A stretch of 63,335 nt of DNA, filler included, from Pelomyxa schiedti (Eukaryota; Protista; Evosea), in assembly GCA_020536535.1 (NCBI GenBank). It is 10 parts of 10 records of this genome, joined end to end, with 100 filler letters (N's around TTAATTAATTAA, not from the genome) between each part and the next. Parts side by side here need not be neighbours in the genome. Positions count along the whole stretch, not along the records: positions 4,909 to 17,459 come from JAHLWZ010000611.1; 9 more parts are not named here. One strand, 5' to 3'. The notes below the pieces were generated by a model. The model made no database searches, was not told where the DNA came from, and saw nothing but the letters and a program-made list of their open reading frames with translations. The position numbers were made by a program, and so were the translations under genes. Positions 6,263-6,882 of this stretch are shown in pieces. Within the stretch, counting starts at the first letter, position 1, and each line of letters begins with the position of its first letter.

Positions 6263-6882
6263 ATGTATCGAACAAAGCAAACTGCTAAAAGTCTAAGGTG
6301 CTGCATTACCGTTGTTTTTCCTTGTGTCGCGTTTTCCGCTCTGTGTTTTCCATCCTCCTTGATGCGCCAACTAACATGTTTTAGCTCCCCGCGCAGTTGC
6401 AACCCAGCCGCGGAAGGCACCGGGAGGAGTAAAGAAGCCACAAGTTCCGCCCTGGTACATGGCACTTCGTGAGATCCGCAAGTACCAGAAGAGCATTGAA
6501 CTCGATCCGCAAGCTACATTCCAGGGCTCGTCAGGGAAATTGCTCAAGGTATACACTTCTGACTTATTAATATATATACACATATATAAAGATATATATA
6601 AAATACCTATAAAATTTATCTCTGTAAGTATAAAATATGTCTTAATACCCAGGCAGATTTCAAGACTGATCTTCGTTTCCAATCATCTGCTATTGCTGCT
6701 CTTCAAGAAGCCGCTGAAGCGTACCTTGTAGGCCTTTTCGAGGATACTAACCTTTGCGCTATCCGTATGTTACACAGCGACTGTGTTTGGATCAAGTAAC
6801 CTAGCATACAGACGCCAAGCGTGTGACCATCATGCCAAAGGACATTCAGTTGGCCAGGAGGATCCGCGGTGAGAGGGCATAA
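6263..6882 (+). CDS. H3: Histone H3 (intron-containing) with an indel-riddled N-terminal half; variant or pseudogene
   Basis: MYRTKQTAK start; [11 protein letters not shown]; intact [36 protein letters not shown]|[23 protein letters not shown]. Introns 6291-6384, 6549-6652 (or 6656), 6765-6811. Confidence 0.9.

Follow-up and report, generated by a model that had tools for sequence, protein, structure and literature searches.

Replacement-type (H3.3-like) histone H3 genes of plants, fungi and protists contain introns and are polyadenylated; pseudogenes show a bias towards deletions (PMC11385596); and in the mitochondrial mRNAs of Physarum, inserted bases make up about 4% of residues (PMC5192504). 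The Physarum insertions are mostly single Cs (PMC3152335) and are placed along whole mitochondrial genes (PMC3152335, PMC5192504). Here we describe an H3-like gene of the protist Pelomyxa schiedti in which exons 1 and 2 have lost bases and exons 3 and 4 have not. Like the replacement-type genes, it has three spliceosomal introns and lacks a histone 3' stem-loop detectable by Rfam scan; its core sequence (IRKYQKS) is similar to that of plant and protist H3, and an intron directly before D78 also occurs in H3 reading frames of other organisms (P0283, P0330). It differs from H3.3-like genes in that the coding sequence of exons 1 and 2 is broken and the tail positions diagnostic of H3.1 and H3.3 are damaged. 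An earlier note on this DNA had recorded the missing bases and left four explanations open: a variant evolving by compensated frameshifts, repair of transcripts by editing, a chimeric pseudogene and a local consensus error. The observation is confirmed; compensated evolution and editing are not supported and lose out, leaving most of the probability with the last two. Our main reading, to which we assign a probability of roughly 0.45, is that the locus is a real, unprocessed H3 pseudogene of the polyadenylated type, damaged at its 5' end, possibly chimeric and with its introns kept.

The gene lies within a window of 63,335 nucleotides, the whole stretch of DNA that was analysed, in a piece (4909-17459) of eukaryotic nuclear DNA that has a G+C content of 45% and is interrupted by two 100-N gaps. 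Its neighbours and parts are listed in Table 1. Neither a histone 3' stem-loop nor a tRNA nor any further Rfam family turned up in Rfam and tRNA scans of the piece. The helicase at the far end carries an HA2 ratchet domain (Pfam, 3.5e-12), with its GCGKTTQ and QRRGRAGR motifs in separate exons. The HSP70 gene has very short introns of 43-48 nt plus a single one of 167 nt, CTAAC-type branch sites and a last intron that is apparently of the GC-AG class (GCAAGC...CAG); its product is extended by a Ser-rich N-terminal stretch, and its last residues are IEQVD, not EEVD. Among proteins of searchable length, the best matches to the C-terminal half of this HSP70 came from mixed eukaryotes and reached only ~64% identity.

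Two features lie 5' of the H3-like gene. A Ser/Pro/Thr-rich open frame of 71 codons (5632-5844, minus strand), divergent from H3 and reaching the scaffold gap, was not matched by any Pfam family and may represent the initial exon of a gene driven, together with H3, by a bidirectional promoter. Just 5' of the H3 ATG, an A/C-rich leader (6229-6261, plus strand) translates to ARAKQQHRKAT, matching the H3 N-terminus ARTKQTARKST at 7 of 11 residues (tblastn E=3.7). We rejected this as a second H3 N-terminus, a composition-driven or chance match being probable at such an E value in an A/C-rich leader, although a remnant of a duplicated 5' end is conceivable.

Table 1. Features of the H3-like locus and its surroundings, in positions of the window
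Feature	Position	Strand	Remarks
RpiB 3' part, 622-nt haplotype copy	4909-5530	+	corresponds to 11340-11984; scaffolding artefact that documents the assembly type
TATA-like box TATAAAAA	6199-6206	+	putative, read from sequence; 57 nt 5' of ATG
H3-like gene	6263-6882	+	three spliceosomal introns
Exon 1 remnant	6263-6297	+	ATG to the homology-supported donor AAG|GTGCTG at 6298
Intron 1	6298-6384	+	T-rich; ACTAAC branch-like site; TTTTAG acceptor
Exon 2	6385-6548	+	164 nt; H3 residues A16-Q77
Deletion, -2	6438-6441	+	P39/H40
Deletion, -1	6460	+	V47
Deletion, -2	6504	+	L62
Deletion, -1	6517	+	P67
Deletion, -1	6525	+	R70
Intron 2	6549-6656	+	108 nt, GTATAC...CAG; AT-rich; two AGs, ending at 6652 and 6656
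Exon 3	6657-6764	+	H3 D78-I113 and first base of H114; no lesion
Intron 3	6765-6811	+	47 nt, GTATGT...ACAG; phase 1 within H114
Exon 4	6812-6882	+	H114-A136 and TAA stop (6880-6882); no lesion
HSP70 (control gene on the contig of H3)	7425-9822	-	convergent with H3; 7 exons, 2,004-nt CDS, 667 aa
RpiB-type sugar-phosphate isomerase, complete gene	~11290-12250	+	
DEAH/RHA-type helicase, multi-exon	13393-17459	-	cut by the end of the piece

The identity of the 3' exons is clear. Exon 3 alone matches the Pfam Histone family (PF00125) at 1.3e-10 and is identical to plant H3.1 (PDB) at 34 of 35 residues, and a tblastn comparison of canonical H3 with exons 3 and 4 gave an E value of 2e-23. The three introns, all GT-AG, split H3 codons correctly, at G|CT for A16, G|AT for D78 and C|AC for H114, and these split codons mark the splice-site positions as ancestral. 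Exon 1 reads M-Y-R-T-K-Q-T-A and then runs into damaged R9-K10-S11-T12.

To map the lesions, we aligned the gene to canonical H3 (P0153:1-136, from a database search) by codon-level dynamic programming that allowed losses of 1 or 2 nt. The earlier note had placed five frame-breaking deletions in exon 2, with H3 words jumping between frames, a further net loss of a multiple of three in the tail, and no lesion in exons 3 and 4. The five deletions came out at those positions in the frameshift-aware alignment, the jumps were seen in three-frame translation, and the tail had indeed lost five codons, with 18 present between A16 and K38 where 23 are expected (net -15 nt). Part of the tail loss also resembles paired -2/-1 losses at the DNA level, with G-CAG-TTG-CA standing for K-Q-L-A. 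Exon 1 has the change A2->Y and single-base losses at 6287 (R9) and 6295 (T12); an alternative parse gives a loss of 9 nt plus one base at the donor. From 6527 onward the alignment is free of lesions, as had been claimed for exons 3 and 4, and the end of exon 2 together with these exons encodes canonical H3, the last 22 nt of exon 2 (LVREIAQ) being in frame with exon 3 through the acceptor at 6656.

In total we counted at least 7 frame-breaking and about 4 in-frame micro-deletions (~11 events), all of them deletions, with no insertion. Among the intact core codons of the lesion zone, 31-32 of 34 still give the canonical residue; deletion events are about as numerous there as visible amino-acid-changing substitutions, and the 3' half of the gene has neither. 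A slippage context was found at only two of the five core deletions. The continuous αN-α1-L1-α2-L2-α3 frame of an H3 is interrupted by five frame-breaks between P39 and R70, and the frame-B translation of exon 2 had no Pfam match. Overall, the pattern is deletion-only, substitution-poor and sharply confined to the 5' half.

Despite these lesions, a stop-free frame of 124 codons can be drawn through the gene, and we reproduced it from the exon model of 28+164+112+71 nt given in the earlier note. The model requires a donor at 6291 (AAA|GTCTAA, with exon 1 ending at 6290) and the upstream AG, at 6652, of a tandem acceptor, CCCAG|GCAG|AT at 6648-6658, whose existence and necessity for the frame had both been described correctly; its AGs lie 4 nt apart, compared with 3 in NAGNAG acceptors. 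With the two acceptors, only 2 of 12 candidate combinations of donor and acceptor leave the frame open. The donor at 6291 lacks support from H3 homology. The homology-supported donor at 6298 lies at the expected end of exon 1 (K15 and the first base of A16) and leads to a stop after 40 codons, and the ancestral, frame-keeping acceptor at 6656 (G|AT, D78) leads to a premature stop with every donor. Given a premature stop after 40 codons with the ancestral splice sites, no nucleosomal H3 would be made from the ATG. The proposal that frame is restored stood in part: the -2/-1 pairs do restore it locally, but the core deletions sum to -7 and there is no restoration within exon 2.

To gauge how much of this could arise by chance, we restored the frame of exon 2 and then deleted 2, 1, 2, 1 and 1 nt at random positions and in random order in 200,000 trials. 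In 31% of trials the upstream frame ran through the simulated exon 2 without a stop, and in 40% of random orders the second and the fourth events each brought the frame back to zero. Neither the open frame nor the pairwise restoration is above chance, and selection for an open frame is without support; on this simulation we rejected serial compensation as a sign of selection. The 5' clustering of the lesions, by comparison, exceeds chance. The first 178 exon nucleotides contain every one of the ~11 indel events, whereas the last 201 are free of them (P about 2e-4); the seven frame-breaking events taken alone give P = 0.005.

If the locus is a pseudogene, the 5' half of an H3 copy (exon 1 and the opening 143 nt of exon 2) would have lost bases by micro-deletions, and the 3' part (the final 22 nt of exon 2, introns 2 and 3, and exons 3 and 4) would still be canonical. 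The sharp boundary near 6527 would then be best explained if the gene is a mosaic, its 3' part having been replaced recently by sequence from a functional paralogue of the same intron structure or having a younger origin in common with it. We infer that such a mosaic arose by gene conversion, that the lesions are carried in the DNA of the organism and not just in the consensus, and that this H3 copy is not expressed as protein. Several features of unprocessed pseudogenes are present: homology with introns retained and, provided that the consensus is correct, disabling frameshifts and a premature stop. That all events are deletions is in line with the deletion bias of pseudogenes. A neutral pattern, with substitutions outnumbering indels and lesions spread along the gene, was not found, and the combination of a substitution-poor lesion zone with a clean 3' half means that a pseudogene needs both a mosaic history and an unusually deletion-rich mutational input. 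We know of no mutational process that yields a 270-nt patch of deletions only.

The main rival, which is possible though it falls short of the pseudogene, is that the H3 of the organism is normal and that bases were lost while this stretch of scaffold was built from indel-prone data, by long-read gap filling, by closure of a graph gap in a hybrid assembly or by failed polishing over a multi-copy gene. Histone genes are multi-copy, which makes read placement and polishing error-prone. The scaffold, a draft, contains two 100-N gaps and a haplotig in the wrong place, and the deletion-only, substitution-poor and sharply bounded profile resembles uncorrected consensus error; a profile of deletions with few substitutions is hard to obtain by neutral decay (PMC6054270). 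In addition, base runs with a length of exactly three have about half their usual frequency in 5631-6530 (24 per kb, compared with 45-48 in three other non-coding stretches), a depletion that might bear on sequence quality there. Homopolymers of 4 nt and longer show no such depletion in the zone, which counts against an artefact, and a test for homopolymer compression as a signature of long reads therefore points both ways. Raw long reads would also be expected to carry insertions, and none occurs among the ~11 indels. The signals of intron 1 and the TATA-like box, which lie within the zone, look intact.

The type of assembly also speaks against an artefact. RpiB is intact in two haplotype copies that are 97-99% identical, differing by few substitutions and indels, all of them intronic, and by one synonymous site; judged by where they fall, these differences appear to be those of two natural haplotypes, not sequencing noise. 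In both contigs, the last variant between the copies is exactly 121 nt away from the end, and the contig that starts at 12085 opens with the identical 121 nt (12085-12205). Such an exact 121-nt structure points to an unmerged bubble in a de Bruijn graph of k=121, and thus to accurate short reads. These 121 nt flank both gaps, which makes the second gap in reality an overlap and the first join a false tandem duplication, in a heterozygous genome. In short reads, indel errors are rare and clustered ones are not expected. The HSP70 coding sequence, 600 nt downstream of H3 on the same contig, has no frame lesion over its 2,004 nt, and other contig ends are clean within coding exons. On the 5' side, a coding-like frame extends to the contig edge: the divergent 71-codon frame has coding-like codon usage (+0.12 bit per codon), above 33 of 34 null stretches, its score of 0.122 being exceeded by one of the 34 and approached by another at 0.107. 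This speaks weakly against a poor-quality extension at the contig end. Taking the assembly type and the neighbouring genes together, we slightly favour a chimeric pseudogene over a consensus error.

A functional, divergent H3-like protein, translated as the 124-residue frame (6291/6652) or as a shorter product from the Met at 6459, is improbable. Such a variant would keep α2-L2-α3 and the H3 C-terminus, with the tail, αN and α1 remodelled by compensated frameshifts, which is unlikely. The 124-codon frame is free of stops, and exons 3 and 4 and all splice signals are perfectly kept, as selection predicts; donors in this genome are loose (GTTGGT, GTACCT, GCAAGC), leaving GTCTAA usable in principle, and H3 variants whose tails are shortened or altered occur naturally (L001, P0001). 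However, the open frame and its compensation are at chance level, with the frame unrestored within exon 2, and the shifted segments replace HKFRPGTV, LIRKLP and RLVREIAQ, which are parts of αN and all of α1, by Pro/Gly/Ser-rich text that is incompatible with a histone fold and, as the frame-B translation of exon 2, goes unrecognised by Pfam. No protein with the shifted peptides was found among 5.8 billion clusters. The case for a compensated-frameshift variant has thereby lost its support: random deletions produce its compensation and its open frame 30-40% of the time, and the donor and acceptor of its reading frame could not have been used by the ancestral gene.

Least probable is recoding at the RNA or the ribosome, in which insertional editing, or frameshifting at each site, would yield canonical H3 from a cryptic nuclear gene. 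With editing, the scaffold would be correct, the gene expressed and the missing 1-2 nt restored in the mRNA, co- or post-transcriptionally; in a milder version, a localised, deletion-only mutational process may act on the promoter-proximal part of this gene. Once gaps are allowed for, the remaining codons spell a near-perfect H3, as if the product were under H3-level purifying selection, and the density of missing core bases, 7 in about 117 nt, is on the order of that in Physarum mitochondrial mRNAs. To our knowledge, however, insertional editing is organellar or viral, and the H3 locus is nuclear, has spliceosomal introns and is flanked by nuclear genes. Its sites cluster in the 5' half instead of spanning the gene, at two of the five core sites a dinucleotide would have to be added, and the missing bases cannot be all C or all U, unlike in the Physarum and kinetoplastid systems: AAG-CCA-C..-AAG can be completed only by CA or AC, and what is missing from the V47 codon is a G. 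Editing would also leave the whole codons missing from the tail and the A2->Y change in exon 1 unexplained. The organellar setting, single-C insertions and spread sites of Physarum-type editing are thus absent, and with a nuclear gene, 5'-confined sites, dinucleotides and mixed missing bases the editing proposal has gained no positive evidence. Nor does the locus show programmed frameshifting of the Euplotes +1 or the viral -1 type; there is no stop or heptanucleotide slippery motif at the five shift sites, and frame B of exon 2 is stop-free.

We also searched databases for the locus elsewhere. Exact look-up of two local open reading frames gave no match, and exon 2 in its frame-B translation matched only an unrelated 163-aa H3 variant (P0001) among proteins. 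Searching with exon 3 and its intron read-through returned generic H3 fragments only, none of which spanned the intron flanks. A gapped DNA pattern covering both deleted and intact forms of exon 2 gave 0 matches in metagenomes, and a degenerate H3-motif pattern matched two H3 genes of unrelated organisms, both AT-rich and without introns (L001, L002). Across the exact, protein and DNA-pattern searches, neither an independent copy of the locus nor a matching database protein was found. Natural, intronless H3 variants in metagenome and Logan contigs (L001:277-347 and P0001) have tails that are shortened or extended, for example APRKSVATKAAKKSSRVGGVKKP. The existence of such tail-length variants means that an in-frame change of tail length is not by itself proof of decay.

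If the locus is a pseudogene or an artefact, the consequence is a matter of annotation only: it should not be called as an H3 protein, and the 124-residue model should be kept out of protein sets. What is unusual is the 270-nt patch of deletions, almost free of substitutions, beside a flawless 3' half. Should the patch be real, it would record an unusual local mutational history, combining mosaic gene conversion with a strong deletion bias; repair at the RNA level, in the very unlikely event that it holds, would have no precedent among nuclear histone genes.

Set beside known systems, the locus resembles low-quality patches of hybrid or gap-filled draft assemblies in that its deletions form a small cluster amid clean sequence, on a scaffold with gaps and haplotig duplication; it differs from them in the exact k=121 de Bruijn signature and the flawless flanking coding sequence, and the window holds no sign of long reads. 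With the mitochondrial cryptogenes of Physarum it has in common the absence of 1-2 nt at many sites of a conserved coding sequence, but it is nuclear and has spliceosomal introns, and the bases missing from it are mixed, at sites clustered in the 5' half. Like unprocessed histone pseudogenes, it keeps a promoter-like region and three introns, is recognisably H3, is disabled by frameshifts and has indels that are all deletions. It departs from these pseudogenes in that the damage consists almost purely of micro-deletions and is limited to the 5' half, next to a flawless 3' half, a distribution that simple neutral decay does not fit.
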